This document shows, in pieces, positions 14,883-61,174 of a stretch of DNA of 64,000 nt (the stretch's first letter is position 1; every line of letters begins with the position of its first letter). The translations under genes were made by a program, and so were the position numbers. Under the pieces are notes generated by a model. The model was not told the DNA's origin, made no database searches, and was given only the letters and a program-made list of their open reading frames with translations. The DNA comes from Rebecca billardiae RCC1528 (taxonomy: Eukaryota > Protista > Haptophyta), in the NCBI GenBank assembly GCA_965240325.2, contig OZ251243.1, positions 806,001 through 870,000 on the forward strand, given 5' to 3'.

Positions 14883-14915
<33 letters not shown>

Positions 14916-15689: not shown

Positions 15690-15735
<46 letters not shown>

Positions 15736-15885: not shown

Positions 15886-15948
<63 letters not shown>

Positions 15949-32352: not shown

Positions 32353-35300
32353 ATGCGCGGTGGGCGGGCCCTCGAGCCTCCGCCGGCGCGCACGCCGCGG
32401 CGGAGCAAGCGCGACTCGGCCGCTGGGGCAGAGGGCGGCTCGCGCCATCAGTCGCTTTCCGCTCGCACGCCTCCCACAGTCCTCGCACCCGCCTCCGCGC
32501 CCATCCCCCCGCCCGCGCCATCGCCGCCGCGCCTGCCCATCGACTCCTCTTCGAGGGGCCCGCTCGACTCCTCTACAAGGGCCCCGCTCTCGCCGAAGAA
32601 GCAGGCCACGAAGACGGCGGCGCAGATGCGTCGCGGCACGCATCGGCACGGCACCTTCACCGACCTGTTCGGCGGTGCCGTGCGCCGCATCAGCTCCGGC
32701 GCCCACATGGAGAGCTCCTCGGCGCACAGCGGCCGGACCGGCCGCGGCGCCGCCGCCGAGCCAAAGCGCGACGAGCCGGCGAAGAAGATGGGCATGTTCC
32801 AGGGCGTGATCGTGCCGACGTGCGCGAACATGTGGGGCGTGCTGATCTTCCTGCGCTTCAACAACATCGTCGGGCAGGCCGGCCTCGGCGAGGCGCTCGT
32901 CATCGCCGTGCTCGCGTACACGGCAGCGCTGCTCACGACGCTCTCGCTCTCGGCGATCGCGACGTGCGGCGCGTCCTCGAAGCAGGGCGTGTTCCCGATG
33001 CTCTCGCGCGCGCTCGGGCGCGAGCTCGCCACCGCCATCGCGCTCATGTACTTCCTCGGCATCACCCTCGGCGCCGTCCTCGAGTCGCTCGGCGCGTGCG
33101 AGGTGTGGATTGCTCTGGACCCGTCGTTTGGCGGATTCTTCTGGGATGTGCAGCTCTGGGGCTCGGTGTTCATGGCGGGGCTGGCGCTGCTCGTGCTCGG
33201 GGGCATGCGGCTCGTGTCGCAGCTCGGGATGGGCTTCTTCGTCGTCACGCTGTGCACGCTGCTCGCCTTCTACGTCTCGCTCATCGGCGCGCCCAACCTC
33301 GCGTCGGCCGAGCCGGAGCCCGCGCTCGGCGCGACGACGGCGGGCGCGTCCGCGGGCGCCGAGTACGAGCTGGGGCTGTCGGCGGAGCACCTGAGCGCGA
33401 ACCTGTCGCCGGGGTACACTGAGGGGCAGTCGTTCTCCACCAACCTCGCCCTCTTCTTCCCCGCCTTCACCGGCTTCCTCTCGGGCGCCAACCGCGCGTC
33501 GTCGCTCGCCAACCCGTCAGCGGGCATCCCGTACGGCACTCTGAGCGGGATCACGATCTCGTTCGTCGTGTACACGGCGTACATGCTGCTGTGGGCGGCG
33601 GTGGGCGAGCGCGAGTTCTTGCAGCTGGCGCGGGGCCACCTCGAGGCGCTGATCTGGCCATCCGTCACCGCCGTCCGCATCGGCATCGTCGTCACCTCGC
33701 TCGGGCAGGCGCTGCAGAACTTGGTCGTCGCGCCGCTGCTGCTGCAGTCCGTTGCGCAGGAGGGCGTGCTTCGCGTGCTCAACCCGTTCGCCGTGCGGCA
33801 CAAGGGCGAGCCGAAGCGCGCGCTGGCGGTGGCGTACGTCGTGGGCGCGCTGTGCGTGCTCATCGGCTCGCTCGACCTCGTCGCGCCGCTCCTCTCCATG
33901 TGCTTCCTGCTGTGCTACGCGTCGATGAACCTCACCTGCTTTGTCCTCGACCTCCTCCAGGACCCTTCGTGGCGGCCCAAATGGCGCTACTTCCACTGGA
34001 GCACGGGGCTGGCGGGGTTCGTGCTGTGCGTCGGGCTGATGTTCGCGATCTCGTTCATCTACGCGCTCATCGCGTGGGCGTGCGCCGGCATGATCGTGCT
34101 CTACATCCTCCGCCACTCCGCCGAGACCGACTGGGGCTCGGCGCTCCACGGGCTGCGCTTTAAGCTGGCGATGCGCTCGCTCGCCGCGATCGACATGCAG
34201 GCGCATCTCGAGATCGCGTGGTGCCCGCAGGTGCTGCTCATGTACCAGCTGCAGGTGGACGAGGAGGTGGACGAGGCCGACGCGAACGCGCCGGGGTACG
34301 AGCCCGCCGACCCCAGCATCTGGGGCGGCGTCGGCGGCAGCACCGCCGACGTCGACGGCCGCGACCGGCGCGCCGGCAGCATCGGCGTGGCGAGCGTGGG
34401 CTCGTCGATCGCCGGCCCGGCCGCGGGCGCGATCGGCACGTCGCGGGGCGGGCACACGCACAAGGTGATGATCTCGCTCGCTGACCAGCTGCGCAAGGGC
34501 CAGGGACTCGTCATCGCCGCCGCCATCGTGCCGCTGCTGAAGGACGAGGGCATGAGCGATCCGGATGTGAGCGCACGCGCGCTCGCGCGTCGCGCGCGCG
34601 CGCGCCCGAGTGTGCGGCGCGGCGCGGCTGCGCGGCGCCGCACCGCGCCGCGCCGCGCGCGCACGGCCGGCGGCCGAGCCGTGGGCGTGCTCGCGCGTGC
34701 GCCGCGTGCGCGCGGCGCCGCACGGCGCGAGCCATGCCCTTCGCCACGCGCGCACTCGCGCTGCGCACTCTTGCCCGCGGCCGCGCGCGTGAGGCGTGCG
34801 CGCCGCTCGCGCTCAGCCGCGCCCGTGCGCCCGCCGCCCCGCGCCGCGCGCCCGCTCCGACGAACGCTCGCGCGTCGGCCGCGCGGCGCGCAGCTGATCG
34901 AGTACGCCGAGTCGGAGAAGAAGTACATGGCGCACCTCTTCAAGCGGATCGGGCTGCAGGGCTTCCCCATGACCGTGCTCTCGCGCGACCCGTTTGAAGG
35001 CAAAGCGTATGCGATCCAATGCGCGGGCCTCGGGCCGCTCACGCCCAACACGGTGCTGATGGGGTGGCCGTGGTGGTGGCGCTCGGACGCGCCGACGATC
35101 GTGCCCGCTTTCCTCGAGAGCATCCACCAGTGCACGCGGCTGCACAAGGCCGTGGTGATCGGCAAGAACCTCAACGTGCGCCCGCGCTGCCACCGCGCGC
35201 CCGCGCTGCCACCGCGCGCCCGCGCTGCCACCGCGCGCGCGCGCCGCGCGCCCGCGCGCCCTGCCGCCGCGCTGACTCGCCCTCGCCCTCGCACGCCGCG

Positions 35301-37152
35301 CCGCGCCGCATTTCCGCGCGCGCGCCCACAGCACTTCCCCACGCACGAGTCACTGCCCATGCCCGGCGGGTACATCGACGTCTGGTGGATCCGCCATGAC
35401 GGCGGTCTGCTGCTGCTGCTGTCAAACTTACTCAAGAAGCACAAACTGTGGAGGCGGTGCCACCTGCGGCTCCACCTCGTCACGGACTCGCTCACCGAGC
35501 CCGCGCTGATCCGCGACCGGATGCACAAGCTGCTCACGATGATCAACATCTCGGCGTCGGTGGAGGAGGTGGTGCGCGTGAGCGAGGGCTCGATGCTGCC
35601 CTACATGACGCGGTGCGCGCGCGCACCCGGCCTGGCCGCTCGGAGCCCATTCGGAGGCCGAGGGGAATGATTCAATTTGTTTATTTGTGTCGCCGCGCGC
35701 GCCCGCTCGCGCCGAGAGTGCCCGCGCGGCGCCGAGACACGCGCAGGGAGGGAGCGAGACACGTGCGCACGCGGCCGCGCCCGCTGCGGCGCGCGCGCGA
35801 AAGCACTCAGCGCGCGCCGCCCCCGCCGCCGCGCCGCCCACGCCCCGCCCGCTGCTCATGCAACCAGCAGCGCCGCGGACGGCGGAGACGCGCACGAGGC
35901 GGATGACGAGCTGCTGTGCGCGCCGGACGACAACGCGATGCCCGAGCAGCTGCTGCTCGAGGCGGTGCACGCGGCGGGCGCCACCCGGCGGCACTCGGTC
36001 GCGCCGCCGTCCGGCAGCGCGACCGACATCCGCGCGATGCTGGGTGCGCGCGCCGCGGTGGCGGGCCCAGACGGTCGTCCATCGGTTGCGCGCTCGCCGT
36101 CGATGCCGGGGGCGGACCTGGAGGTCGGCCGCCCCGCGGGCTGCAGGCTCTCGGCCGGCGGCACCGCCGGCCCGGCGCGGCGGCACAGCTTGCGATCCGG
36201 TCGGTACAGCCGCTCGGACTCGGGCCGGCGCGCCGCTGCGGACGTGGGCGGAGGCCACGAGAGCGATGACGAGGACTCCGAACCAGTGCGCCCAGTGCGC
36301 CGTCGCTCCGTCGCAACCGCCGGCGTCGCGGCCAACGTCGGCTCGCGCACCTCCACCGCGCAGACCTCCACGCCCTCGCCGCGCGGCGCGGCGCAGGGCT
36401 CGTCGCTCTCGTCCGCAGCGCCGATGGCGGCGGCTGGCGCGATCGCGCCGTCATTGTCCGCACCGCTGCCCACGACGGCGAGCCCGCACTCGGCGCGGCT
36501 CCAGCGACATGGCACGGACGACGGGACGCGCGCCGGCGCGCCCGGCGCGGATGGCACGGATGCGCCGCCGCCGCCCGCGCCGCCCGTCGAGCCGCCGCCC
36601 TCGCCCGGGCCGCCGGCACCGCCGATGCCGCCGTCGCCGCCGCGCGGCGCAGGCGGAGCGGGCGTGCGCGCGGCGCCAGACGACGGCAGTGCGCACAGCC
36701 GGCCGCGATCTGCGCAGCCCAGCCCGCCGGGCTCGGCGGGGCTGCCGTCGCGTGCGCCGCGCGACCTCCTCAAGTTCGTCACGCGGAACGCGCTCAACCC
36801 GCAGCAGGCGGACGAGCTGTGCAACATCTTCGAGAGCGCCACCGCCAAGTCGGCCGCGGCCGCGGCCGCTGCGGCCGCCGCGGAGGAGGCGCCCGCGGCT
36901 GAGCAGCGCGCGTGGTCGTGGGAGGAGATCCACGAGATTATCGTGCAGCGCTCGCGGCAGTCGCAGCTCGTGCTGATCAACCTGCCCGACCCGCCCGAGG
37001 CCGAGCGCACCGAGTCCACCCTCCACTCCGCCTCGGATATCGAGGACATGGTGCACTACATGGAGTACATGGAGGGGCTGAGCGCCTCGCTGCCGCGCGT
37101 GCTCTTCGTGCACGGCGCGGGGCAGGAGGTCATCCGCTTCGACCTGCTCTGA
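32353..37152 (+). CDS. SLC12/CCC cation-chloride cotransporter
   Basis: KMGMFQGVIVPT..NMWGVLIFLR, TTLSLSAIAT, FFPAFTGFLSGANR, APLLSMCFLLCY, PSWRPKWRYFHW, DWG, IDVWWIRHDGGLLLLL, LVLINLP, LPRVLFVHG.G.EVI. Introns 34567-34893, 35176-35331 and 35613-~35867. Start codon is uncertain. Confidence 0.92.
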
Positions 37153-43995: not shown

Positions 43996-44313
43996 GTCGG
44001 CGCTGGCGTGGCACCGCGGCACTGCAGCACTCAGCCTGGCGCCGCCGATTCACTTGCAGACTTGCTGCCGCACAGTTGCACAGCGGCGCCGCGCGCCGCG
44101 CGGCCCGCCGGCCCGGTCCCAACCGGTTCGTATTTAAAAAGTAAATAATCGTAACGAGTGGAGAACGGCCCGCGGTTGATTCGGTTGAACGCGAATTAAA
44201 ATAATATGATTGATAATAATAACTAGCTTAGTTATTATTATTATATTTTGAATATAATAATAAATTATTATTACTTTAAAACCGTCCTAAGACTGACCAG
44301 TGTCACAGTCAGT

Positions 44314-47978: not shown

Positions 47979-48864
47979 GCGATCCGTGCCTACGGGACTC
48001 TGCGCCGGAGTCCGCACGGACTCTGCGCCGGGCGCGGCTCACCGCTCCAGCGGGCTGGCGCACTCATTGGACGCCAGCCCTTGCGCGGTGCCAGCAGTGC
48101 GACCGCGGTCGTCGCCTGTCGGCTCAGACGGCAGTGCCGGCCAGCTCCGCCTGATCCGCGTGGTCATGGCCGAGGCGCGGCGCGGGCCCGCCGTGCACCC
48201 GATCAGTCTCTCGCAGGCTCCGCGCTACGCGGACCGTGTCCGAGCCGCACGGTGCTGGCAGCTGCCCGGCGCGAGAGTCCCGGCCGTCCGGACAGTCCGA
48301 CTCCCGTCGCGGACCCGTCGCCGGTTTGATTCGCAGTCGGACCGGTCGAGTGACGTGCTGGCTGCGGGTCGGTGCAGCCGGTTTCACTGACGAGTCTGGC
48401 CGCTGACGCTGTTCATGTGACGCGAGCCCGCGTGGCCGTGCTCGGGGCTCATGGATAGCGGCCCGTTCCGGCTGGCCTAGCCAGCGGCTTGGGCATCGAC
48501 TTAAAGCGACTTATTCGTGTGATCGTGCTCGCGCCCGTTGCAACCGCTCCGGGGACCAGACCCGGACCGGGATTCGAGAACCTGTGGCGAAGAGTGCAGC
48601 TTTGAATTCCTCATAGATAGGCTTCAAGGTAATACAAATGCGCCGATTAAAATGATGCTGTGCAAACGCCGAGTACCATTAATCATCCAATTGGTCACAT
48701 TATAAGCGGGTACAACGTACCCGCTGGTAAGGAGGGGGCCCAATGGAGACACCTCATGTCGACTTATTGGTAGTCGTCGACACACGACGAAAGATACGCA
48801 AGCTTGCCCGGCCTCCTGACAAAGGTAACGTGCGATCGAGAGCGCAGAGTGGTGGCTCCCCAGG

Positions 48865-51800
48865 ATGGGGAAGCGCGCGTCGCGGACACGCGTGGGTGAC
48901 GCCGCGCGCGGCGGCAGCCACGCACAAGGCTGGTCGGGTAGGAGACGAGGACAACCGTCTCTCCTCGCCGCCTGCGTGCTCGCTGTGCTCTGCGCGGGCC
49001 TTCCTGCCGCGGCTCAGGACCCGTCGCCGCCGCCGAGCCCGCCGCCGAGCCCGCCGCCGAGCCCGCCGCCGAGCCCGCCGCCGAGCCCGCCACCGTCGCC
49101 ACCACCGCCAAGCCCGCCTCCGAGCCCGCCGCCGAGCCCTCCGCCGAGCCCGCCTCCGAGCCCGCCGCCGAGCCCGCCACCTTCGCCACCACCGCCGAGC
49201 CCGCCGCCGAGCCCGCCGCCGAGCCCACCGCCGAGCCCGCCGCCGAGCCCGCCGCCGAGCCCGCCGCCGAGCCCGCCACCGAGCCCGCCGCCGAGCCCGC
49301 CGCCAAGTCCGCCGCCGAGCCCGCCGCCGAGCCCGCCACCGAGCCCGCCGCCAAGCCCGCCACCGAGCCCGCCACCGAGCCCGCCGCCCTCGCCACCACC
49401 GCCGAGCCCGCCGCCGAGCCCGCCGCCCTCGCCGCCACCGAGCCCGCCGCCGAGCCCGCCACCGAGCCCGCCGCCGAGTCCACCACCGTCGCCACCACCG
49501 CCGAGCCCGCCACCGAGCCCGCCGCCCTCGCCGCCACCCTCGCCGCCGCCGAGCCCGCCGCCATCGCCGCCGCCATCGCCGCCGCCGAGTCCGCCGCCAT
49601 CGCCACCACCGAGCCCGCCGCCCAGCCCGCCACCCAGTCCGCCGCCCAGCCCGCCGCCGCCGAGCCCACCGCCAAGCCCACCGCCGAGCCCACCGCCGAG
49701 CCCACCGCCACCCTCGCCCCCGCCATCGCCGCCGCCGTCGCCGCCCCCGAGCCCTCCGCCGCCGTCACCTCCACCTTCGCCGCCGCCAAGTCCGCCGCCG
49801 AGCCCGCCGCCAAGCCCGCCGCCGAGCCCGCCGCCCAGCCCACCGCCGTCCCCGCCACCGCCAAGCCCTCCACCATCGCCTCCACCGAGCCCGCCGCCGA
49901 GCCCACCGCCGAGCCCGCCGCCCTCGCCACCACCAAGCCCGCCGCCGAGCCCGCCGCCCTCGCCGCCGCCGAGCCCGCCGCCGAGCCCGCCGCCGAGCCC
50001 GCCGCCGAGCCCGCCGCCGAGCCCGCCGCCGAGCCCGCCACCGCCAAGCCCGCCACCGAGCCCGCCGCCATCGCCGCCACCCTCGCCGCCACCGAGCCCT
50101 CCGCCGCCCTCACCGCCACCCTCACCGCCGCCGAGCCCGCCGCCGAGCCCGCCACCGTCGCCACCGCCGAGCCCGCCGCCCAGCCCCCCTCCCTCGCCAC
50201 CGCCCAGCCCCCCTCCCTCGCCACCGCCTAGCCCGCCGCCGAGCCCCCCGCCGAGCCCGCCGCCACCCTCGCCCCCGCCCTCGCCCCCGCCATCGCCGCC
50301 ACCGTCACCGCCGCCCAGTCCCCCTCCCTCGCCACCGCCCAGCCCGCCGCCGAGCCCGCCGCCATCACCGCCGCCGAGCCCGCCGCCGAGCCCGCCACCG
50401 AGCCCGCCACCGTCACCACCGCCAAGCCCTCCGCCGAGCCCGCCGCCATCACCACCACCACCGAGCCCACCGCCCAGCCCGCCGCCGAGCCCGCCGCCAT
50501 CACCGCCGCCGAGCCCGCCGCCGAGCCCGCCGCCGTCGCCACCACCGAGCCCGCCGCCGTCGCCTCCGCCGAGCCCGCCGCCGAGCCCACCGCCTAGCCC
50601 GCCACCGTCACCACCGCCAAGCCCGCCGCCGAGCCCACCGCCATCACCGCCGCCGCCCAGCCCGCCGCCCAGCCCGCCGCCCAGCCCGCCACCCAGCCCG
50701 CCGCCAAGCCCGCCGCCCAGCCCGCCTCCGTCGCCACCGCCATCACCGCCGCCCAGCCCACCGCCGAGCCCGCCGCCGAGCCCGCCGCCCAGCCCGCCAC
50801 CGTCACCACCGCCAAGCCCGCCACCGAGCCCGCCGCCATCACCGCCGCCGCCCAGCCCGCCGCCCAGCCCGCCGCCGAGCCCGCCACCCAGCCCGCCTCC
50901 GAGCCCGCCGCCCAGCCCGCCTCCGTCGCCACCGCCATCGCCGCCGCCCAGCCCACCGCCGAGCCCGCCGCCGCGCCCGCCGCCGTCGCCGCCGCCCAGC
51001 CCGCCGCCCAGCCCACCACCCAGCCCGCCGCCCAGCCCGCCGCCCAGCCCACCTCCATCGCCGCCGCCCTCACCACCGCCCAGCCCACCGCCCAGCCCAC
51101 CGCCCAGCCCGCCGCCGAGCCCACCCCCATCACCGCCGCCATCGCCACCGCCGAGCCCGCCACCGAGCCCGCCGCCCAGCCCGCCGCCCAGCCCGCCGCC
51201 GAGCCCGCCGCCGAGTCCGCCGCCCTCGCCGCCGCCATCACCGCCGCCGAGCCCGCCGCCATCGCCACCACCGAGCCCACCGCCGAGCCCTCCGCCATCG
51301 CCGCCACCTTCACCGCCACCCTCGCCGCCGCCCTCGCCGCCGCCCTCTCCGCCGCCGAGCCCTCCGCCAAGCCCGCCGCCATCGCCACCGCCATCACCGC
51401 CGCCGAGCCCGCCGCCATCGCCACCACCGAGCCCGCCGCCATCGCCACCGCCGAGCCCGCCGCCGAGCCCGCCGCCGAGCCCGCCGCCGAGCCCGCCGCC
51501 GAGCCCGCCGCCGAGCCCGCCGCCGAGCCCGCCGCCGTCGCCGCCGCCGAGCCCGCCGCCCAGCCCGCCGCCCAGCCCGCCGCCGAGCCCGCCGCCGAGC
51601 CCACCGCCCTCGCCGCCGCCATCACCGCCGCCGAGCCCGCCGCCATCGCCACCGCCGAGCCCGCCGCCATCGCCACCGCCGAGCCCGCCGCCGAGCCCGC
51701 CGCCGAGCCCGCCGCCGAGCCCGCCGCCGAGCCCGCCGCCGAGCCCGCCGCCGAGCCCGCCGCCGTCGCCGCCGCCGAGCCCGCCGCCGAGCCCGCCGCC

Positions 51801-54800
51801 AAGCCCGCCGCCAAGCCCGCCACCGAGCCCGCCACCGTCGCCACCGCCGTCTCCACCACCGAGCCCGCCGCCCTCGCCGCCGCCAAGCCCGCCGCCAAGC
51901 CCGCCACCGAGCCCGCCCCCGTCGCCGCCGCCCTCGCCGCCGCCCTCGCCGCCGCCCGCGCCGCCGCCGAGCCCGCCGCCCTCGCCCCCGCCTTCGCCGC
52001 CGCCCAGCCCGCCGCCCAGCCCGCCGCCGAGCCCGCCGCCCAGCCCACCTCCGTCGCCACCGCCGTCACCACCGCCCAGCCCACCGCCCAGCCCGCCGCC
52101 GAGCCCGCCGCCGTCGCCGCCGCCCAGCCCGCCGCCCAGCCCGCCGCCCAGCCCGCCGCCCAGCCCGCCGCCCAGCCCACCTCCATCGCCGCCGCCCAGC
52201 CCGCCGCCCAGCCCGCCGCCCAGCCCACCGCCCAGCCCGCCGCCGAGCCCACCCCCATCACCGCCGCCATCGCCACCGCCGAGTCCGCCGCCCAGCCCGC
52301 CGCCCAGCCCACCGCCGTCGCCGCCGCCGTCGCCGCCGCCGTCGCCGCCGCCGTCGCCGCCGCCAAGCCCGCCACCGTCGCCGCCGCCCAGCCCGCCGCC
52401 GAGCCCGCCGCCGAGCCCGCCGCCCTCGCCCCCGCCGCTGCCGCCGCCCTCGCCGCCGAGCCCGCCCTCGCCGCCGCCGCTGCCGCCGCCGCCCTCGTGC
52501 TTCGAACTGGGCGGCATCACAGACTTCAACAACCTCACCTACTCGGACGCGCTCGGCGGCTGGAACGGCTGGCAGAACGACCCTGACGGCGACTTCGACT
52601 GGGTGCGCAACATCGGCGAGACGCCGACGGCGGGCACCGGCCCGACTGCGCCGGCCGCGTCGAGTGACACGCTCTCGGGCGGCTCGGGCGGCCACTACAT
52701 CTACGCGGAGGCGACGGGGCAGCAGGTGGACGCTAACGCCATCCTCGTCACGTGCCAGCTCGTGCCCCTTGACACGACCCTCTTCTTTCTGTACCACGCG
52801 TACGGCGCGGACATGGGGATCCTGGACGTGGAGTTTCAGGTGCTCGACTTCCAGGCGGGGGTGGTCGACGCGCCGTGGAGCTTCGCCGGCCGCATCTCCA
52901 ACGTCGACCAGAACGCGTGGAAGGAGGGGCAGGTCGAGATCCAACAGCCGGTCGGCACGCGCGGCTTTGTGCGGCTGCGGTTCTCGCGCGGCATCTCCGA
53001 GCTCAGCGACTTTGCGATCGACGACATTGTGCTCACGCGCTTCCGGCCGCCGCCGCCGCCGAGCGCGCCGCCGCCGCCGCCGAGCGCGCCGCCGAGCCCG
53101 CCCACCGAGCAGGAGGCGACGCTCTTCACCACGATCCAATTCACGCGCGCCGCGAGTGACTCGGACGAGCGGCTGCGCGCCGCGCTCGAGTCGAGCGTCG
53201 AGCTCGCCATCGAGCTGCCTGGCGAGCAGTACCGCGGGATCGGGCTGGTGCGCGCGCTCGCGCCGCTCAACCTGCCCAACGCGAGCAGCGCGCCGAGCTC
53301 GCCCGTCGAGCTCGTCTTCCTCATCTTCGGCACGCTCAGCCTGGAGGCCCAGGGCTACGACGCGAACGCCAAGGCGGCCAACGTGACGGTGGGTTCGCTG
53401 CAGGCGGCCATAGACCGGACCGTCGCGCTGAGCGGGCAGGGCAACCTGACGGGGATCGTGACGGTGCTGAGCGTCGACTCGGTCTCGTCGGTCGAGAAGA
53501 TCTTCCCGCCGCCCTCGCCCGCGCCGCCGCCCGCGCCGCCCTCGCCGCCGCCGCGCACCGCCACCGTGGCCGACTCGGCCGCGCTGAGCTCCGAGATCTC
53601 GGTCGTCCCAGACGGCGGCGAGATTATCCTGGCCGAGGGCTCCTTCGACCTGAGCGAGGAGCTGGTGATCTCGGGCAAGCGAGACGTGGTGATCCGCGGG
53701 CAGGGCAACCTGACGGTGCTCAACGCGGGCGCGAGCGGCCGCCGGCTGATCGTCGCGAGCAACGTGCGGATGGTGCTGAGCAACATCACGCTGATGGCGG
53801 GCGGCGGCAACGGCACCGGCGCGGCCGGCGGCGCGCTGGACCTCAGCGGCGACGACACCGACGTTGAAGTGCGCGGCTGCACCTTCTCCTCGAACGGCGG
53901 CGCCGCCGTGAGCGTGAGCGGCCGGGGCAAGGTGAGGCTCGACGGCTGCACGTTCTCGGGCAACACCGGCGCGGCCACTGGCGCGGTCGGGCGGAGAAGA
54001 CGGCTCGCGACCGGCGCGGGCGCGGGCGCGGGCGTGCTCGTACGCGCGGGCGCCACCGTGACCATCGTCTCGTCGTCGTTCGTCAACAACTCGGCGGAGT
54101 TTGGCGCGGTGTACGCGGACTCTGGCTCGCAGCTCACGGTGCGGACGTCGAGCTTCGAGCGCGCCTCGCTCGGCGCGACGCAGGGCGGCGCGATCTGGGT
54201 GTCGGGCGCGACGCTCAACCTGGTAAGCAGCTCGTTTGTCAACAACGCCGCCTCCGAGTCGGGCGGCGCCGTGTACGCGGAGGCGAACAGCGTCGTGAGC
54301 GTGCGCAAGTGCACGTTCGAGGGCGGGCGCGACGTGGTCTCGGACGGGACGACGGCAGCCTCGTTCGACGGCGGCTCGATCGCCGTGACCGACTCGACGC
54401 TCGACGTGGTCGACTCGTCGTTCTCCAAGTCGACCGTCTCGCTCGTCGGCGGCTCGGGCGGCGCCATCTTTGCTCTGTCATCCAACGTGCGCATCACGGG
54501 CACCACCTTCTCCGGCTCTGTCGCGTCGAACGGCGGCGCGGTGTACTTCTACTCGCTGGACACGACGACGCGGCTGCTGCTCGGCGACAACAGCCTGCAG
54601 GGCAACTCGGCGCTCATCTGCGCCGGCATCAAGTTCGAGGCGGCGGACCGCGAGCTGATGCTCACCTGCGCCGAGAACACGTGCGGTGACGAGGTCGCGC
54701 TCGAGGCGACCAACCTGTGCAACGACGCCGACACGTCGGTCGTGTGCCCGCTGTACGACCTGACGGGGGTCACGCCGAGCACGGGCGCGAGCGTGCTCGG

Positions 54801-57800
54801 CGGCGAGCCGCTCAACGTGACGGGGTGCGGCTTCACCTCGTTCACGGGCGCGGCGCTCCTGCAGTTCGACTCGACGGCGGACGAGTTCGACGCGACGCAG
54901 CCGGTCACCGTGCTCAGCGCGACGCGCGCGCTCGTCACCTCACCTGAGGGCGTGGGCACAGCCTCGCTCTCGCTCTCGATCGGAGGCGAGGTCGCGCCGT
55001 CGAGCGTGAGCCTCCAGTACGAGGCGAACGTGCGCTGCCTGCCGGGCGAGGAGCCGAACGCCGCCTTCGACGCGTGCGAGCCGTGCCTCGACGGCTGGTA
55101 CAAGCCAGCGGCGGGCAACGTCGCGTGCACGCAGTGCTCGGAGGGCGACAACGACATCGACCTGTTCACGCGCAAGACGGGCGCAACCTCGCGCGACGAC
55201 TGCGTGTGCGGCGACACGGACGACGACGGCTTCGACAACCCGCCGCGCTCGGCGGGCGGCAGCCTCTCGTGCTTCTGCCCCGCCGGCTCGGAGTACTCCT
55301 CCGCTGGGCGCAACTGCGTCCCCTGCTCGGTCGGCTTCTACAAGTCGGAGTCAGCCGACAAGGACCGCAAGTGCATCTCGTGCGAAGACGATGACCCCAA
55401 CCTGACGACGGAGCTGACGGGCTCCAACTCGTTCGAGCAGTGCGTGTGCGACGCGGGCTTCTTCCTGCGCGAGGGCGAGGACGCCGACGGCACCGCCGTC
55501 AAGTCGTGCTACCCGTGCGATTCCACCTCGACCGACGGGTGCCCGCAGGAGAGCGTCACCATCCAGACGCTCAACCTGCGCTCCGGCCACTGGCGCGCGC
55601 GCGACGAGACAGCCGACATCCGCACGTGCCCGGTCGAGGCGGCGTGCCAGGGCGGCTCGTCGAGCAGCGCGTACTGCGCGCCGCACCACGTCGGCCCGTA
55701 CTGCTCCGTGTGCGAGGAGGGGCACCACGTCGGCGCGAACGGCCTGTGCACGGCGTGCGACTCGGGCGAGCTGCGGCGCGCGGGCTTCATCGCGCTTGGC
55801 GTCGTGCTCGGCGTGGCGGTGGCGGCGGCGCTGGTCGTGCTGCGCGTGCGCACGCTGCGCAACGCGGGCAGGTACCGCATCCCCGCGTCGCTGCTCATCA
55901 CGATGCGCGTGACGGGCCGCTCGCTCCTCGCCTTCCTGCAGATCCTCCTGCTGATTGAGCGCGCGTACGGGGTCACGCTCCCAAACGCGTTCAAAAATTT
56001 CGTCCTCAACCTGCGCTTCCTGCAGCTCGACTCGCTGTACGTGTACGGCCTCTCGTGCGTGGGCGCGGACTACTACTTCAACATGTACATGCTCTCGCTG
56101 CTGCCCGCCGCCGTGTGCGCGCTCGCGACGCTGCGCGCGCTGCTGCTCTACGCGCTCCTCGGCCGCAAGATCACGATCGAGGCGATTGGCACGCCGACGC
56201 TGCTCGTCGCGTACGTCGCGCTGCCCACGGCGATCACGACGATCTACTCCTTCTTCAACTTTGAGTTTGTGGACGCGGAGGCGGCGGAGCGCACGCTGTA
56301 CCTGCGCGTGGACTACTCGCTCCGCTTCGGCTCGGAGCTGCACGACTTCCACATGCCCTTCGCCATCATCTTCATGGTGGTGTACACCGTGCTTCTGCCC
56401 GCCACCCTCTACCATGTACTTGTGCAGCCGGGAGGCATCACGCTTCGCTTCCTCGCGATTGGCTACCGCGAGCCGGTGGGCTGGTGGGAGTCGATCGAGG
56501 TGGTGCGGCAGGTGCTGCTCGCGGGCGTCGCGGTGATCGTCGGGCTGGTGATCCGCCTCTCCCTCGAGCAGCGCTTCCCGCAGATCTCGCCTCAAGACGT
56601 CGGCATCTACGTCTCGGCCATCCAGCTATTGTTTGCCATCCTCGTGCAGATGCTGTTCACGATCCTCACCGCGACGGTGAAGCCGCTCGAGGCGAACGCG
56701 AACCACCTGGTGTCGCTGCTCGCGCACACGGCGCTCGCGCTGATCCTCGTCTTCACGCTGGTGCACCACCTGATGCGCCGCATCGCGCTCGCCTCGATCC
56801 ACCCGTTCGACGTGGAGCTGGGCATCGGCATGATTGTCGTCACGATCTGCGTGCTCTTCGTGGGCATCCCGGCGCTGCTGCGCGAGGCGCAGCGCGAGCG
56901 CAACAAGCTGGTGCTGCGGGACGCGCAGGACAACCAGCGAATCCGCGCGCGCCCGCTCGCGGCGAGCGGCGAGCGCTTCCACGCGTTCATCAGCCACGGT
57001 GCGCGCCGCGCGGCCGCGCGGCCGCGCGCCGCGCGCTGGCCGCGCGCTCGCTGGTCGCTCGCGCGCGCGGCCGGCGCCGCGTCCGCGCGCTGCTGCCCGC
57101 CTGCTCACCACGCCGCCGCCGCCGCCGCCGCGCCCCTCCGCCCGCGCCCCCCCCCCGCAGTCTGGTCGACGGGCCAGGACCAGTCGCGCTCGCTCAAGGC
57201 GCAGCTGATGGCGGCCGTCCCCGGCATCGATGTCTTCCTTGACGTGGACAACCTGACCGATATCGGCTCCCTGGAGAGCCTCGTGACCGAGACGCAGTGC
57301 GTGATCTTCTTCCTCTCGCGGGGCTTCTTCCGCTCGCGCAACTGCCGGCGCGAGGTGCTCGCGGCCTTCGCGGCGAAGAAGCCGTGCATCATCGTCACCG
57401 AGACCTCCGCGATCCACGGCGGCGCGACGCTCGCCGCGATGCGCGCCGAGTGTGAGTCGTGTGGGGACCCGCGCGTGAGTGTTCTGGCGGAGCACTTCTT
57501 CGGCGGCTCGCGCGACGCGCTGCGCAACGCGCGCACGCGCGACGAGGCGCCGGAGGAGGCGCCCGTCTCGCACTCGATCCGGTGGTACCGCGAGGCCGCG
57601 CACCTGCGCATCACCGTGCTCGAGGTTTGCGAGCAGCTCCGCGCGGCGGGCGTGTTGCTGCCTCCGCCAGAGGACCTGACCAACCCGTACTCGCTCAAGT
57701 TTGGGTGGAATGCGCTGCGCGACCGCACGGCGGTCGCGGCGCTGCGCGAGGGGCAGGTGCCCGTGCTGCTGCGCAGGCACGGCGCGCTCGTCGTGCAGTA

Positions 57801-59493
57801 CCACTCGCTCGCCGCGCGGCGCGGGCTCGACAGGCAGCGCTCGGTGCAGCGGATGCTCTCAGGGCAGGCCGGTGGGCCGCGCGCGATCGAGCCGGACGGC
57901 GGCGGCGAGGAGGAGGGCGCGGCCGCGAGCGGGGCGTCCGCGGAGGGCGCGTCGCCCGCGCGGCCGGGCACCGCGAGCTCGGGCGCCGGGCGCGGCAAGA
58001 AGCCGGGCTCGCCTGAGCGGCGCGGGATGCTCGCCCGCACGGGCTCGCGCATCCTGAGCGGAGGCGGCGACGCGCGGCGCGTCTCGCCGGAGGATGGCAC
58101 GGCCGAGGGCGAGGAGGCGGACTCGGACCTCGGCGGCGACGACGCGGACGGCGCGGAGGCGGCGGCTCTGATGGACGACGTGCGCGTGCTCAAGCTCGAG
58201 CGCAACATCCACGTCGTCATCCGGCCGATGCAGCTGCACCGGCCAAGGCGCACATACCCCGCGCACGAGCGGCCGCACGTGCTGCTGCTGCTGCGCGCGG
58301 ACACGTTCGGCTGGGGCATGGTGATCGACGAGATCGACGACTTCGACAAGCTGCTGGCGGGCGACTACCGGCACCCGCTGCCGAGCACGCTCGCGTCCGC
58401 GCGCATCGCCGACGTCGACGTGTACCACCTGCCGCGCCACCTCGCGCCCGAGCTCACGCCGGGCGCTGCCGAGCCTATCGCCACCCTCGCAGGCGAGCTC
58501 AATACCGACCTGCATGACCTGCAGCTGCTGCACCGCACCGAGGACGGCACGGGGTGGCAGTACGTGGGGCGCGACGGGCCCGAGCGCAAGAGCGGCCGCG
58601 GGCTGATCGCCTGGCCGCAGGATGGGCGGCTGGCCGCGCGGCTCGCGCGCATGATCGAGGCGGGCGGGCACGTGATGACGGTTCTGCTGGACGACGACTC
58701 GGCCATGACTGTGCCTTTCCACTACATCCTGTGGACCGCCCCGCTGCTGCTGCGCCAGGGCCTCTCCTATGAGCGGATCTGGGGCCCGCTCGCGGTGCCG
58801 CTGCGCGTGGGCGCGCACGAGGACGCGTCCAACGACGACATCTCGCGCAACATCATCAAGGTGCTGCGGGGCGACCTGTCGGGCAGCTCGGTGCATCTCG
58901 AGCAGGGCGGGCCGAGCGGTGGGAGGCATGGCGCGCTGCACCGCTCCTTCCACTCGGCGCGGTCCAAGACCTTCCGCAAGGGCAGCGCGTACAGCACGGC
59001 GATGGCGGAGGCGGCGCGCGAGTCTTCCCTCCACTCGGAGCATCGCCGCACCGCGACGAGCCGCGCGTCGGCGCAGGGGCAGAGCCCGCCGATGCAGCGA
59101 GGCTCAACCACGGGCAGCGTCGGCGGCGCGTCGCCGCCCACGCAGGCGTCGTCCGCCGCCCAGCGCCGCCCCCCGCCGCCCAGCTCGTCCCCGCCGCCGC
59201 GCGGCAGCGCGGGCGAGGGCGCCGACACGGAGCAGCCAGGCGCGGGGGCTGCGACCCAGGCATCGCCCGTGCCGGGCCCGGACCGGGTGACGCCGGGGGC
59301 AACGCGCGCGGCCGCGGGCGCGCCCGCGCCCGCCGCACCGAGCGGTGGTGGCGAGGGCGACGATGCGGCCTTGAGCGATGGCTCGCGCAGCCGAACGGCG
59401 CCGCCGCGGACACCGCCGGCTGCGACGGGCGGCGGCGAGGGGTCGGCATCCGCCGCGACATCGTCAGCCCCGGCGCACGCCAAGCAGGCATGA
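48865..59493 (+). CDS. Giant multidomain surface receptor-like protein: signal peptide, (SPPP)n stalk, MAM, SEA-like, right-handed beta-helix, IPT/TIG, Cys-rich repeats, ~9 TM, TIR, degenerate second TIR (~3488 aa after removing intron 56999-57160)
   Basis: Signal LLAACVLAVLCAGLPAAA-Q. MAM: GWQN...DFDWVR..G.TPT.GTGP..GGHYIYAEA..FLYHAYGADMG.L.V..FAIDDI. GGAI/GGAV and FxxN repeats. CxxCxxGxYK repeats. WWESIEVVRQ TM block. TIR: FHAFISHVW.TGQDQ..VFLDVDNL..VIFFLSRGFFRSRNCRREV. Confidence 0.88.
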   Translation: MGKRASRTRVGDAARGGSHAQGWSGRRRGQPSLLAACVLAVLCAGLPAAAQDPSPPPSPPPSPPPSPPPSPPPSPPPSPPPPSPPPSPPPSPPPSPPPSPPPSPPPSPPPPSPPPSPPPSPPPSPPPSPPPSPPPSPPPSPPPSPPPSPPPSPPPSPPPSPPPSPPPSPPPSPPPSPPPPSPPPSPPPSPPPSPPPSPPPSPPPSPPPSPPPPSPPPSPPPSPPPSPPPSPPPSPPPSPPPSPPPSPPPSPPPSPPPSPPPSPPPPSPPPSPPPSPPPSPPPPSPPPSPPPSPPPSPPPPSPPPSPPPSPPPSPPPSPPPSPPPSPPPSPPPPSPPPSPPPSPPPSPPPSPPPSPPPSPPPSPPPSPPPSPPPSPPPSPPPSPPPSPPPSPPPPSPPPSPPPSPPPSPPPSPPPPSPPPSPPPSPPPSPPPSPPPSPPPSPPPSPPPSPPPSPPPSPPPSPPPSPPPPSPPPSPPPSPPPSPPPSPPPSPPPSPPPSPPPSPPPSPPPSPPPSPPPSPPPSPPPSPPPSPPPPSPPPSPPPSPPPSPPPSPPPSPPPSPPPSPPPSPPPSPPPSPPPSPPPSPPPSPPPSPPPSPPPPSPPPSPPPSPPPSPPPSPPPSPPPSPPPSPPPSPPPSPPPSPPPSPPPSPPPSPPPSPPPSPPPPSPPPSPPPSPPPSPPPSPPPSPPPSPPPSPPPSPPPSPPPRPPPSPPPSPPPSPPPSPPPSPPPSPPPSPPPSPPPSPPPSPPPSPPPSPPPSPPPSPPPSPPPSPPPSPPPSPPPSPPPSPPPSPPPSPPPSPPPSPPPSPPPSPPPSPPPSPPPSPPPSPPPSPPPSPPPSPPPSPPPSPPPSPPPSPPPSPPPSPPPSPPPSPPPSPPPSPPPSPPPSPPPSPPPSPPPSPPPSPPPSPPPSPPPSPPPSPPPSPPPSPPPSPPPSPPPSPPPSPPPSPPPSPPPSPPPSPPPSPPPSPPPSPPPSPPPSPPPSPPPSPPPSPPPSPPPSPPPSPPPSPPPSPPPSPPPSPPPSPPPSPPPSPPPAPPPSPPPSPPPSPPPSPPPSPPPSPPPSPPPSPPPSPPPSPPPSPPPSPPPSPPPSPPPSPPPSPPPSPPPSPPPSPPPSPPPSPPPSPPPSPPPSPPPSPPPSPPPSPPPSPPPSPPPSPPPSPPPSPPPSPPPSPPPSPPPSPPPSPPPSPPPSPPPLPPPSPPSPPSPPPLPPPPSCFELGGITDFNNLTYSDALGGWNGWQNDPDGDFDWVRNIGETPTAGTGPTAPAASSDTLSGGSGGHYIYAEATGQQVDANAILVTCQLVPLDTTLFFLYHAYGADMGILDVEFQVLDFQAGVVDAPWSFAGRISNVDQNAWKEGQVEIQQPVGTRGFVRLRFSRGISELSDFAIDDIVLTRFRPPPPPSAPPPPPSAPPSPPTEQEATLFTTIQFTRAASDSDERLRAALESSVELAIELPGEQYRGIGLVRALAPLNLPNASSAPSSPVELVFLIFGTLSLEAQGYDANAKAANVTVGSLQAAIDRTVALSGQGNLTGIVTVLSVDSVSSVEKIFPPPSPAPPPAPPSPPPRTATVADSAALSSEISVVPDGGEIILAEGSFDLSEELVISGKRDVVIRGQGNLTVLNAGASGRRLIVASNVRMVLSNITLMAGGGNGTGAAGGALDLSGDDTDVEVRGCTFSSNGGAAVSVSGRGKVRLDGCTFSGNTGAATGAVGRRRRLATGAGAGAGVLVRAGATVTIVSSSFVNNSAEFGAVYADSGSQLTVRTSSFERASLGATQGGAIWVSGATLNLVSSSFVNNAASESGGAVYAEANSVVSVRKCTFEGGRDVVSDGTTAASFDGGSIAVTDSTLDVVDSSFSKSTVSLVGGSGGAIFALSSNVRITGTTFSGSVASNGGAVYFYSLDTTTRLLLGDNSLQGNSALICAGIKFEAADRELMLTCAENTCGDEVALEATNLCNDADTSVVCPLYDLTGVTPSTGASVLGGEPLNVTGCGFTSFTGAALLQFDSTADEFDATQPVTVLSATRALVTSPEGVGTASLSLSIGGEVAPSSVSLQYEANVRCLPGEEPNAAFDACEPCLDGWYKPAAGNVACTQCSEGDNDIDLFTRKTGATSRDDCVCGDTDDDGFDNPPRSAGGSLSCFCPAGSEYSSAGRNCVPCSVGFYKSESADKDRKCISCEDDDPNLTTELTGSNSFEQCVCDAGFFLREGEDADGTAVKSCYPCDSTSTDGCPQESVTIQTLNLRSGHWRARDETADIRTCPVEAACQGGSSSSAYCAPHHVGPYCSVCEEGHHVGANGLCTACDSGELRRAGFIALGVVLGVAVAAALVVLRVRTLRNAGRYRIPASLLITMRVTGRSLLAFLQILLLIERAYGVTLPNAFKNFVLNLRFLQLDSLYVYGLSCVGADYYFNMYMLSLLPAAVCALATLRALLLYALLGRKITIEAIGTPTLLVAYVALPTAITTIYSFFNFEFVDAEAAERTLYLRVDYSLRFGSELHDFHMPFAIIFMVVYTVLLPATLYHVLVQPGGITLRFLAIGYREPVGWWESIEVVRQVLLAGVAVIVGLVIRLSLEQRFPQISPQDVGIYVSAIQLLFAILVQMLFTILTATVKPLEANANHLVSLLAHTALALILVFTLVHHLMRRIALASIHPFDVELGIGMIVVTICVLFVGIPALLREAQRERNKLVLRDAQDNQRIRARPLAASGERFHAFISHGARRAAARPRAARWPRARWSLARAAGAASARCCPPAHHAAAAAAAPLRPRPPPAVWSTGQDQSRSLKAQLMAAVPGIDVFLDVDNLTDIGSLESLVTETQCVIFFLSRGFFRSRNCRREVLAAFAAKKPCIIVTETSAIHGGATLAAMRAECESCGDPRVSVLAEHFFGGSRDALRNARTRDEAPEEAPVSHSIRWYREAAHLRITVLEVCEQLRAAGVLLPPPEDLTNPYSLKFGWNALRDRTAVAALREGQVPVLLRRHGALVVQYHSLAARRGLDRQRSVQRMLSGQAGGPRAIEPDGGGEEEGAAASGASAEGASPARPGTASSGAGRGKKPGSPERRGMLARTGSRILSGGGDARRVSPEDGTAEGEEADSDLGGDDADGAEAAALMDDVRVLKLERNIHVVIRPMQLHRPRRTYPAHERPHVLLLLRADTFGWGMVIDEIDDFDKLLAGDYRHPLPSTLASARIADVDVYHLPRHLAPELTPGAAEPIATLAGELNTDLHDLQLLHRTEDGTGWQYVGRDGPERKSGRGLIAWPQDGRLAARLARMIEAGGHVMTVLLDDDSAMTVPFHYILWTAPLLLRQGLSYERIWGPLAVPLRVGAHEDASNDDISRNIIKVLRGDLSGSSVHLEQGGPSGGRHGALHRSFHSARSKTFRKGSAYSTAMAEAARESSLHSEHRRTATSRASAQGQSPPMQRGSTTGSVGGASPPTQASSAAQRRPPPPSSSPPPRGSAGEGADTEQPGAGAATQASPVPGPDRVTPGATRAAAGAPAPAAPSGGGEGDDAALSDGSRSRTAPPRTPPAATGGGEGSASAATSSAPAHAKQA
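49021..52497 (+). repeat. ~3.5-kb 12-bp-period coding repeat encoding (SPPP)n with occasional SPPPP
   Basis: agcccgccgccg and synonymous variants. Confidence 0.97.
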
Positions 59494-59510: not shown

Positions 59511-61126
59511 TGGCCCGCGGTGCAGGGCGGAGCGCGCAGCGTGGAGCCCGCACCAGCGGGCCCGAACCACGTTTCAAAAAGATCTTTGATCAAGAAAAAA
59601 GGGACGGGGGGCGATTTTTAGGGCTGGCGGAGACCGAGTTTCGAGTTTTTGAGATCGCATAGAGAGGTCTATTAGGCCGAAAATAAGCGCGTCCAGCTCA
59701 TTCCCTTAAGTAAAGTGCGATCTGGACGTCAGCTGGACGTGACATTAACGTAACGGTTCGTTACGAGCGCGATTTTGTGGGTAGACTCTCGTTCATGTGT
59801 GATAGTTTGCCTCCGCCTTGATGAATATGAACTTGGCTTCGCGGCGGTTGGTATCTAGAGTCTAAAACCCGCAAGCCTTATTGAAAATACCCGCGCAGCT
59901 ATTCGTTGCCAGCCCATTCCATAGTCACTGACTTACCGAGCTGGCGAGCTCAAAACCTGCCGTCGTCGCAAGGACGACGTGCTGTGCAGGTTTCTTCTGC
60001 TGGGGTGGCGAGCGAGCCTCGACGACTCTTGGTTGGTCCGCAAGGGGGCGCTCGATGGGCAGGTGCGCGTGGCAAGTGCCGAGTGGCGCCTGGAGCGCGC
60101 GTCTGCGGCGGGTCCCGACGGCCGTCGACATCGCGTTCGTGCCCGCTCACTAGTCACTCCGCACGCCCCTGCCGCGCCCTGTCGATGCCTGCGCGGCCGG
60201 CCGGCGCGCGGCCGCGCCGCCGCCGCCGCAGCCGCCGCCCTGTGTTCGGGCTCTCGCAAGCTCGGGGGCAGCGGCGCATGATGCCGGACTGATCGATCTC
60301 GGAGTCTCCGACTTCACCACACGCCCCCCTTGCCATGCCTCTCCGCCAGGGTCTCCCAGAACTCTTCTTCAGAGCAGGCGCAAGTCGAACTCGGAACTGG
60401 CCGCGGCCCCGCGCGCCGTCGGCTCCCCGTGGCTGTCAGCTCCGCGTGGCCTGGGCGCCTGGCGTGCCCAGAGCTGGCCGTGCCTCTGCGACGCGTGCCG
60501 AGCCTGACCGAGGTGTGTCACCCCGTGCACGCGCGGCGCGCGCAAGCACCGGTGCTGCATGGCTGCTCGCACCGTGCTCCCTGGCTCGCGGTCAGTCAGC
60601 TCGGCCGCGTGGTGCCTGGTGTGCACGTAGAGTCGCGCTCATGCGTCGCTCACGCCTCGCGCCCGCCTGTCGGCCGTCGCGCAGGCGCGCAGGTCGAACC
60701 CTACTGACCTGCAGATCATCTACTCCTGCGCTGCTGGCGTCGCGGCGACGACGGTCAGCGGCAGGCCCGAACGAACGGTCGAATCCGCGCGGTCCCGCGC
60801 CGTCCGGCTCCCTGGCTGTCAGTCAGCTCCGCCGGTGGCCTGGCGTGCAAGAGTCGCGCTCGTGCGTTGATCACGCCGAGTCGCATCCGCCTGTCGGCCG
60901 TCGCGCACGCGCAGGGGGTCAGGTAAGGGCCGTCTGTGATGAGGGCAGCTCGGCCGACGACCGACATCCACACTCGGCGCACGCCGGCGGCGGCGCGGCG
61001 CTGGGGCGGCGCGCCGCTGGATGGAGTCTAGTTACACGTGTACGGGACGACTGCGACGGAGGGTGCACCGCCACCGCGGGCCCCGAACTACGTTCGTTCT
61101 ACGGAAAAGGACCGCGGAACGCGGTC
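59511..61126 (+). mobile_element. Non-autonomous Helitron2/Helentron-like element, copy 3
   Basis: 5' TGGCCCGCGGTG can pair with downstream GCACCAGCGGGCC (5' hairpin). 3' CACCGCGGGCC at 61072-61082, then hairpin GACCGCG-gaa-CGCGGTC at 61110-61126. Flanked by (CAT)n and (TA)n. Confidence 0.8.
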
Positions 61127-61137
61127 ATATATCATAT

Positions 61138-61174
<37 letters not shown>

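Follow-up and report, generated by a model that had tools for sequence, protein, structure and literature searches.

No immune signalling module is shared more widely among living things than the TIR domain, and its link to the outside in unicellular eukaryotes is hardly known. What such a link could look like is the question raised by a locus of the haptophyte Rebecca billardiae RCC1528, on a stretch of 64,000 nucleotides (positions 806,001 to 870,000 of contig OZ251243.1, assembly GCA_965240325.2) that is here called the window and in whose coordinates all positions are given. An open reading frame (ORF) of 3,542 codons, with a gene span of 10.6 kb, leads on its forward strand from a signal-peptide-like segment through a giant ectodomain and a series of membrane helices into a TIR domain. 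An earlier note, made from the letters alone, had taken this frame for one gene and for an analogue, possibly independently assembled, of the Toll-like receptors (TLRs). The reading that we favour on balance, and consider reasonably probable, is that of a single gene of a Pavlovales-type haptophyte, encoding a type-I-oriented nine-pass surface receptor that would act through TIR-driven NAD+ signalling. The gene and its intron are as follows.

48865-59493, forward strand: whole gene, from the start ATG to TGA, in two coding exons (48865-56998 and 57161-59493; spliced product of 3,488 amino acids, aa)
56999-57160, forward strand: intron of 162 nt, GT..AG, in frame, stop-free, 91% GC

The DNA that holds the ORF has a content of guanine plus cytosine (GC) of about 70%, and on the opposite strand of the locus there are ORFs of 400-1,170 codons that arose by chance, so that the length of an ORF is by itself weak proof of coding. 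The frame at 48865-59493 is coding, more than chance, because its codon statistics and the GC pattern of its flanks agree. Each segment between the MAM domain and the C-terminal domain, both included, has a GC at third codon positions (GC3) of 0.93-0.97, with 0.60-0.81 at first and 0.38-0.63 at second positions, and a sliding scan for codon periodicity loses the signal at two places only, 56950-57190, which holds the intron, and the last ~450 nt. In this tail the periodicity weakens, while GC3 stays at 0.9 or above up to about 59200. Inside the ORF no 100-nt window has a GC content below 0.59; in the flanks it drops to 0.40-0.53 (48600-48800) and 0.48-0.55 (59600-59999).

The frame is unbroken across 56999-57160 only because the intron, by coincidence, keeps the frame and contains no stop codon. 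Comparison with relatives identifies this stretch as an intron: tblastn alignments of the related proteins P0003, P0154 and P0014 end at 56997 and restart at 57160 with consecutive residues, and the 54 Ala/Arg/Pro-rich residues that it would encode, between ...FHAFISH and VWSTGQDQ, are missing from all 51 relatives in a TIR alignment of 52 sequences. Its borders are a donor G/GTGCGC at 56999 and an acceptor CCCCGCAG/TC at 57160, and it is the only internal stretch of the ORF without codon periodicity. The earlier note had quoted the start of the TIR as FHAFISHVW, which is the spliced reading and is right, given this intron. For the TIR, the input to Pfam and AlphaFold2 was either the unspliced stretch or the part in exon 2.

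It might be argued that the ORF is a chance frame in a 70% GC genome, a pseudogene or the fusion of two neighbours. In addition to the chance ORFs on the opposite strand, this view can call on the fact that sequencing-run searches gave no RNA run and that the homologous region of Pavlovales sp. CCMP2436 (50% GC, intron-rich; GCA_026770615.1, MU631407.1, 1-14422) carries two annotated genes, including KAJ1633083.1. In that locus the exons for the beta-helix, IPT, Cys-rich, transmembrane, TIR and C-terminal parts lie on one strand with their order kept. The break between the annotated genes falls on a scaffold gap of 1,644 N at 7207-8850, and the nine-helix module itself is severed; the split is therefore an annotation artefact, and the public model is truncated. 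Homologues are collinear over the junction in question: P0014 (1,931 aa) follows the window protein over 1,132 aa that begin in the beta-helix, take in the helices and reach the TIR, the alignments of P0003 and P0005 span the Cys-rich domain to the C-terminal domain, and P0044, an MMETSP transcript, has the Cys-rich, transmembrane and TIR parts on one molecule. Within the window, four Pfam domains, above or near threshold, share the one frame, and the codon periodicity is strong and uniform. An artefact of the gene model is accordingly a highly unlikely explanation, and the earlier claim that the frame from 48865 to 59493 is one gene is borne out by the codon statistics and the collinear relatives.

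The relatives also define the family to which the gene belongs. A phmmer search of 1.84 billion representatives with the part from the transmembrane module to the C-terminal domain gave 1,443 hits at E ≤0.001, with 589 at ≤1e-10, and the census was made on the best 150 representatives (clusters at 50% identity). Among these, the TIR was found in 144, the nine-helix module in 98 and both in 93, and the membrane module precedes the TIR in all 93; of the 51 hits with a TIR only, 45 are N-terminal fragments. A full-length query against a set of 5.8 billion proteins returned two distant hits only and no self hit. Judged by these sequences, a constant cassette of Cys-rich region, nine helices and TIR, to which the C-terminal domain may be added, is present in at least 93 clusters, and the ectodomains joined to it are shuffled. 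The window protein carries the Cys-rich region, the nine helices and a TIR with H-x-F-(L/I)-S-H, W-x-x-G-Q-D and S-x-N-C-x-R-E, and is collinear with P0003, P0004, P0005, P0014 and P0154. The best-scoring relative, P0003 (43% identity over the matched stretches, 40% over the membrane module), consists of leucine-rich repeats (LRRs), Cys-rich region, nine helices, TIR and C-terminal domain, and LRRs are present in P0005 as well. Members with a named source belong to Pavlovales sp. CCMP2436, to Prymnesium parvum and to a metagenome-assembled genome of Prymnesium, and the ESM Atlas clusters of the family are mostly from Haptophyta. The following Pfam families were counted in the ectodomains of the 34 members in which 150 residues or more precede the helices.

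Ephrin_rec_like: 17 of 34 members
Beta_helix: 3 of 34 members
LRR: 2 of 34 members
TNFR_ELAPOR1-like: 2 of 34 members
ANF_receptor: 1 of 34 members
Laminin_G_3: 1 of 34 members
MAM: 1 of 34 members
Glyco_hydro_19: 1 of 34 members
GPS: 1 of 34 members
Big_9: 1 of 34 members

The earlier note had proposed to look for paralogues and for ectodomain shuffling, and the clusters do share the cassette and differ in their outer domains. Its description of a receptor built from non-TLR parts is apt for this paralogue but not for the family, since P0003 has an LRR ectodomain. The idea of independent assembly likewise applies to this paralogue only: with its cassette shared with the LRR-bearing P0003, the window protein is one member of a family and not a unique assembly. 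A TIR pattern scan of giant-virus contigs found no relative. As a separate observation, an uninterrupted ORF of 2,756 codons (P0001) at 49-8319 of a contig from JGI metagenome 3300037348 holds two full Cys-rich/multi-transmembrane/TIR cassettes in tandem; this could be a genuine double receptor or else a pair of neighbouring genes with no stop between them.

The next question is whether the TIR can be expected to act as an enzyme. The domain and its key codon lie at the following positions.

56974-57645, forward strand: TIR domain, with strand A (RFHAFISH) in exon 1 and the remainder in exon 2
57352-57354, forward strand: GAG codon of the invariant Glu in S-R-N-C-R-R-E of helix C (residue 2830 unspliced, 2776 spliced)

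AlphaFold2 models the unspliced stretch as a five-strand alpha/beta domain with a core predicted local distance difference test score (pLDDT) above 90, in which the intron-encoded residues form a low-confidence loop. Strands A to E occupy model residues 7-13, 92-94, 112-119, 143-148 and 206-209, with intervening helices. The top 50 Foldseek matches of this model in the PDB are all TIR domains with a probability of 1.00, RPS4, RPP1, RUN1 and SARM1 among them. When TM-scores are normalised to the target, single-domain SARM1 TIR chains reach 0.63-0.70 and the TIR-domain chains of plants 0.48-0.57. A profile of the 52 family TIRs matches RPPT, Caenorhabditis elegans TIR-1/SARM1, Cat1, RPS4 and RPP1 at E-values of 0.003-0.009. 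The model confidence and the structural matches are in agreement with the TIR fold that the earlier note had assigned.

That note had also stressed the Glu of an S-x-x-C-x-x-E motif, and this residue is indeed kept: the helix-C Glu (model helix 127-138) is invariant in 52 of 52 sequences and falls in the same alignment column as the Glu in WCLDEL of plants and in HKEL of TIR-1. In these 52 TIRs, whose mean column identity is 35%, the other invariant positions are W, Q and D of W-x-x-G-Q-D, a D and an L of FLDVDxL and the S of S-x-N-C-x-R-E, a motif whose N, C and R reach a conservation of at least 90%. The VFLDVDNL segment of strand B and the BB-loop aligns to VFIDVDKL of TIR-1. These comparisons of sequence and modelled structure suggest a TIR of the SARM1/plant enzymatic class that retains the helix-C Glu. 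The helix-C Glu has been described as the defining feature of catalytic TIRs; several protist TIRs have been found to have NADase (NAD+-cleaving) activity, and a green-alga TIR makes 3'cADPR, a cyclic ADP-ribose (cADPR), in a Glu-dependent manner (bioRxiv 10.64898/2026.04.20.719644).

A different possibility, which we hold to be doubtful, is that the TIR is non-enzymatic and recruits TIR or adaptor proteins on clustering, as most TIRs of animal TLRs and interleukin-1 receptors do, with the Glu motif serving for binding. Plant, SARM1 and many bacterial TIR enzymes contain a W-x-x-x-E pair, and the Trp of this pair matters for activity in several TIRs; throughout the present family an Asn stands in its place, which would suit a scaffold. 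So would the human TIRs of IL-1R9, IL-1R10 and TLR2, which bear the Glu and show no NADase activity in vitro (bioRxiv 10.64898/2026.04.20.719644). However, the invariance or near-invariance of the helix-C S, N, C, R and E and of FLDVD at 35% mean column identity is what one typically sees at an active or ligand site, every one of the nearest structures is an enzymatic TIR, and most eukaryotic TIRs outside the TLRs retain the Glu, with many of those tested being active (bioRxiv 10.64898/2026.04.20.719644).

For the TIR to report on the outside, it has to lie on the other side of the membrane from the ectodomain, and the module between the two comes into question.

55765-56904, forward strand: nine-helix transmembrane module (ORF residues 2301-2680)

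AlphaFold2 with 30 homologues gave a model with a pLDDT of 87.1 and a predicted TM-score (pTM) of 0.84, with nine helices, each 27-33 residues long, and on the outer side a hairpin and two short helices, which is in line with the roughly nine helices counted in the earlier note. The stretches after helix 1 and after helix 9 are both strongly basic, which requires an odd number of helices. With the N-terminus placed outside, the predicted inner loops hold 13 Lys and Arg against 5 in the outer loops, and the family averages of loop charge agree, the outer loops being acidic. Sequons of the type N-x-S/T number 10 in the ectodomain, together with 36 Cys, and 1 in the 862 residues of the cytosolic part. 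From the odd number of helices, the loop charges under the positive-inside rule and the way in which sequons and Cys are distributed, we infer that the TIR would lie in the cytosol, as the earlier note had deduced from the odd helix count. The best-conserved motif of the membrane module in the family is found in the inner loop before helix 6 (56440-56505, residues ~2527-2547) and reads F-L-x-x-x-Y-R-x-x-x-x-W-W-E-x-x-E-x-x-R-x-L-x-L-x-G, with nearly invariant W; the window version is FLAIGYREPVGWWESIEVVRQVLLAG.

Among solved structures, a profile search with the module returned designed helical proteins only, the best Foldseek match was the receptor PTH1R (E-value 0.026, TM-score 0.15), and the best VIA-align match was to designed bundles with a Z of 8.5, which is within helical-bundle noise. 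We therefore rejected the matches to G-protein-coupled receptors, rhodopsins and designed bundles. In the ESM Atlas the module superposes at TM-scores of 0.66-0.77 on clusters of several kinds: haptophyte clusters with Ephrin_rec_like and TIR_2, a cluster in which 11% carry PF06011 ("TRP"; clusters partly annotated with this family match at a TM-score of 0.73), and cnidarian clusters, one with LRR families and named for DUF7630 and another in which 10% of the members have DUF7630. The neighbours of the module in the language-model search give the same picture, PF06011-annotated clusters included. On the basis of these predicted models, the nine-helix module may be far more widespread than its fusion to TIR. 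The LRR-DUF7630 multi-pass proteins of Cnidaria and Porifera share with the window protein the superposable module (TM-score 0.72-0.73) and a DUF7630-like Cys-rich end before helix 1; they differ in that TIR_2 is not among their common Pfam families and in that their taxa are animals or associates, and the relation is one between predicted models only. A further match of the module is an Ephrin_rec_like cluster for which Nucleocytoviricota is the taxon recorded most often.

The PF06011 matches bring up an alternative for the function of the whole protein, namely that the module is distant kin of fungal Pkd2/Flc proteins, putative stretch-activated Ca2+-permeable channels, and that the protein is a sensor of surface integrity or mechanical force. 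The SPPP rod at the N-terminus would then tether it to the cell covering, a pull or damage to the coat would open the channel, and the TIR would regulate the ion flux or be regulated by it instead of giving the primary output. Six of 30 family members have sub-threshold PF06011 hits (best 2.4e-5, 23.8 bits, against a gathering cutoff of 28.5), and these are collinear, with module positions corresponding roughly one to one to profile positions. Schizosaccharomyces pombe Pkd2 consists of an extracellular domain, a nine-helix transmembrane domain of 405 aa and a cytosolic tail (bioRxiv 10.1101/2022.08.11.503631), and its Ca2+ permeability is activated by membrane stretch (PMC9727806). With its N-terminus out, its C-terminus in and its nine helices in ~400 aa, the modelled module fits this description, and the rod is distal, as a tether should be. 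However, no member reaches the gathering score and the window's own module has no PF06011 hit at E 1; no TRP_N/ML-type head was found, the head domains differ from those of Pkd2/Flc, which have no TIR, and there is no solved structure for comparison. The variety of ligand-binding-type ectodomains also suits receptors better than a pure mechanosensor. The kinship with PF06011 is thus a lead from sequence profiles and not a membership, and a channel of this kind remains a minor possibility that we take seriously but do not prefer.

It is also conceivable, if rather more doubtful, that both activities are joined, the module being a Pkd2/TRP-like cation channel and the fused TIR making its own gating ligand. 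In that case engagement of the ectodomain would lead to NAD+ cleavage, and a product of the ADP-ribose (ADPR) or cADPR type, or a conformational change of the TIR, would open the attached channel. If true, surface sensing, second-messenger synthesis and Ca2+ entry would be combined in one polypeptide. Separate proteins do this in plants and animals, where TIR products act through EDS1 on helper-NLR channels and where SARM1 or ADPR acts on TRPM2. Taken with the LRR-bearing members, such a protein would be an independently evolved, enzymatic, multi-pass haptophyte counterpart of the TLRs.

The receptor reading that we favour also has to account for the outer part of the protein, which is composed as follows.

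48865-49017, forward strand: signal-peptide-like segment with a basic n-region, hydrophobic SLLAACVLAVLCAGL and then PAAAQ
49018-52494, forward strand: Ser-Pro3/4 array of 287 units, ~1,159 aa, extensin-like or hydroxyproline-rich-glycoprotein (HRGP)-like, at the distal N-terminus
52567-53037, forward strand: MAM domain (Pfam PF00629, E 2.3e-9, 37.7 bits against a cutoff of 26.4)
53104-53556, forward strand: alpha/beta-looking segment of ~150 aa, without a family
53557-54750, forward strand: right-handed beta-helix with PbH1-type repeats (Pfam PF13229, E 4.1e-13, two stretches)
54751-55026, forward strand: weak IPT/TIG-like domain (Pfam PF01833, E 0.025, 15 bits against a cutoff of 20.9)
55027-55764, forward strand: Cys-rich juxtamembrane region of two Ephrin_rec_like repeats (PF07699, 4.2e-14) and a DUF7630-like end

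The signal peptide proposed in the earlier note corresponds to a segment with a hydrophobic core at residues ~32-50 and a Kyte-Doolittle peak of 2.2 at residues 29-53; its cleavage is inferred. The ~1,150-aa SPPP "stalk" of that note is real as an array, but it forms the distal N-terminus and does not stand between the membrane and the globular domains. Its residues (52-1210) comprise 266 SPPP units, 14 SPPPP units and a few variants, tandemly repeated behind the signal peptide as in HRGPs of the extensin-like Ser-Pro3-4 kind. Tandem Repeats Finder reports a period of 12 and 283 copies with DNA matches of just 77%: there are 72 distinct DNA units, in which Ser is encoded by AGC, TCG, TCA and AGT, that is, by both codon families. 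The peptide is near-perfect over this diverged DNA and every unit length is a multiple of 3, which marks the array as a selected coding repeat and not a collapsed microsatellite. If fully extended as a polyproline-II helix, with the usual rise per residue, the rod would be about 0.36 micrometre long.

Of the globular domains named in the earlier note, the MAM domain is well supported by its Pfam match and by a phmmer hit (3.1e-7) to the MAM of MDGA1 (PDB 5oj2), and so are the beta-helix, which is collinear with that of P0014, and the Cys-rich repeats. The IPT-like domain stands in part, in that the TIG match covers nearly the full profile (positions 4-82 of 84) but remains below threshold. For the segment at 53104-53556, which had been called SEA-like, a Pfam search to E 10 gave no match, and the sole lead to SEA was a language-model neighbour at rank 9 with a score of 0.77; the SEA identity is thus unsupported. 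The Cys positions of the juxtamembrane region are invariant in the 34 relatives, and its DUF7630-like end just before helix 1 matches PF24633 weakly (0.014), covering positions 3-45 of 45.

Proteins of adhesion and of the matrix typically have (SPPP)n rods and MAM domains. This counts for the view that the rod, the MAM and the beta-helix serve mainly in adhesion between cells or gametes or to a substrate, or in matrix assembly, like the volvocine HRGP agglutinins, and that the TIR merely reports contact; the 10 sequons and 36 Cys of the ectodomain point in the same direction. The family, however, conserves the signalling cassette and not the rod or the MAM, which occurs in 1 of 34 relatives, and phmmer with the MAM and the alpha/beta-looking segment found no match among 167 proteins. 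A protein made primarily for adhesion or mating is for these reasons improbable.

On its inner side the protein continues beyond the TIR, through a linker, into a region that the earlier note overlooked.

58177-58950, forward strand: conserved cytosolic C-terminal domain of ~250 aa, with DTFG, WPRD, VVTVLLDD and A-x-P-L-R-x-G-x-H-E
58951-59490, forward strand: low-complexity tail rich in Ser, Pro, Ala and Gly

The C-terminal domain shows 39-44% identity with the final part of CCMP2436 KAJ1633083.1 and with an MMETSP transcript, has 9 invariant columns in an alignment of 12 sequences and is present in 25 of the 150 representatives. It gave no Pfam hit at E 10, no PDB hit and no ESM Atlas lead. 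With the TIR profile hhalign assigned a probability of just 13%, the hint being to the second half of a TIR, and a second, degenerate TIR is no more than an idea drawn from this profile comparison. The tail, from the composition of its translation, is probably disordered.

From these parts we suggest the following mechanism for the favoured surface receptor. A ligand or a mechanical pull on the ectodomain would alter the packing or clustering of the nine-helix module, and the rearranged module would bring the cytosolic TIRs together, as enzymatic TIRs need. The assembled TIRs would cleave NAD+ to signals of the ADPR or cADPR type, or deplete NAD+, and this output would lead to a defence or stress response. 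A parallel exists in the haptophyte Gephyrocapsa (Emiliania) huxleyi, in which genes for membrane TIRs with the conserved Glu, combined with extracellular regions or multiple transmembrane helices, are turned on within 0.5 h of virus addition (PMC12489294).

Several points weigh against this proposal. The link to the virus-responsive genes of G. huxleyi is by architecture only. No ligand, partner or downstream sensor of ADPR-type signals was found, and sequencing-run searches yielded no transcript data for this gene. The window TIR without strand A scores 26.5 bits on Pfam TIR_2, just below the cutoff of 28 that is passed by the relatives P0003 (29.1), P0040 (28.6) and P0091 (28.1). Lastly, the residue four before the catalytic Glu, aligned to the plant Trp, is Asn in at least 90% of the family, which makes NADase activity less certain than the earlier note implied.

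According to previous research, the closest described proteins are the membrane TIRs of G. huxleyi, which have been proposed as receptors that generate signals on viral infection (PMC12489294). Like the window protein, they come from a haptophyte and possess a region outside the cell or several transmembrane helices followed by an intracellular TIR with Glu at the catalytic position, and one example, whose outer domains are leucine-binding-like and EGF-like, is similar to those relatives found here that carry ANF_receptor and Ephrin_rec_like. That example has a single transmembrane helix, and LRR or nucleotide-binding-site (NBS) partners are stated to be absent (PMC12489294). The paper makes no mention of a nine-helix module, a Cys-rich juxtamembrane domain, a C-terminal domain, LRR-bearing members or giant SPPP rods, and the two groups are likened here by description and not by sequence. 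Our literature search found no description of the Cys-rich/nine-helix/TIR cassette, its family size, its LRR-bearing members or its possible PF06011 kinship, and none of DUF7630 or Ephrin_rec_like combined with TIR. Receptor-like membrane TIRs in haptophytes have thus already been published (PMC12489294), whereas the cassette family is apparently undescribed.

Compared with the TLRs of animals, the window protein has the same general plan of a surface ectodomain of ligand-binding kind and a TIR that the topology model places in the cytosol, and its relative P0003 even has LRRs. It differs in having nine transmembrane helices instead of one, no LRR among its Pfam hits, a TIR nearer to the SARM1/plant enzymatic class and an extra C-terminal domain. 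Since no homology of the ectodomain or transmembrane part to TLRs was found, the likeness is most simply explained as convergent, as far as the sequences tell. With the TIRs of SARM1, TIR-1 and plant TIR-NB-LRR proteins the window TIR shares the fold, the aligned helix-C Glu and FLDVDxL, which is similar to FIDV(E/D)KL of SARM1/TIR-1; it has Asn where they have Trp four residues before the Glu, and a nine-helix tether where they have ARM-SAM or NB-LRR modules.

Around the gene, the window holds a protein with WD40 repeats and a double bromodomain (12072-18428, reverse strand, 2,118 codons) and an SLC12-type cation-chloride transporter (32305-35670, forward strand, AA_permease and SLC12); both are genes of an ordinary eukaryotic kind, as would be expected in nuclear DNA. 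An ORF at 6961-8706 on the forward strand (581 aa) consists almost entirely of EsV-1-7 Cys-rich motifs (Pfam PF19114, 1.8e-179, 12 stretches). Another, at 26984-29938 on the reverse strand (984 aa), has hydrophobic segments and a match to inosine-uridine nucleoside hydrolases of 30 bits against a cutoff of 34.2. It was rejected as kin of the transmembrane-TIR cassette, BLASTP of its membrane and C-terminal parts having shown no similarity. Two short AT-rich islands, at 44195-44280 and 61140-61172, lie amid DNA of 65-75% GC; one is rich in ATT/ATA with a GC of 0.18, and the other is an (AT)n microsatellite.

The novelty of the finding is tempered by the recent publication of receptor-like membrane TIRs in haptophytes and of enzymatic TIRs in algae and protists (PMC12489294; bioRxiv 10.64898/2026.04.20.719644). 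In its combination of a constant cassette with varied outer domains, LRR, amino-acid-receptor-like, lectin-like and chitinase-like, the family resembles repertoires of pattern-recognition receptors. Its members are concrete candidates for the sensing of viruses, bacteria and grazers in bloom-forming algae, and with them it can be tested directly whether a TIR enzyme can be controlled by a module that is multi-pass and possibly channel-like.

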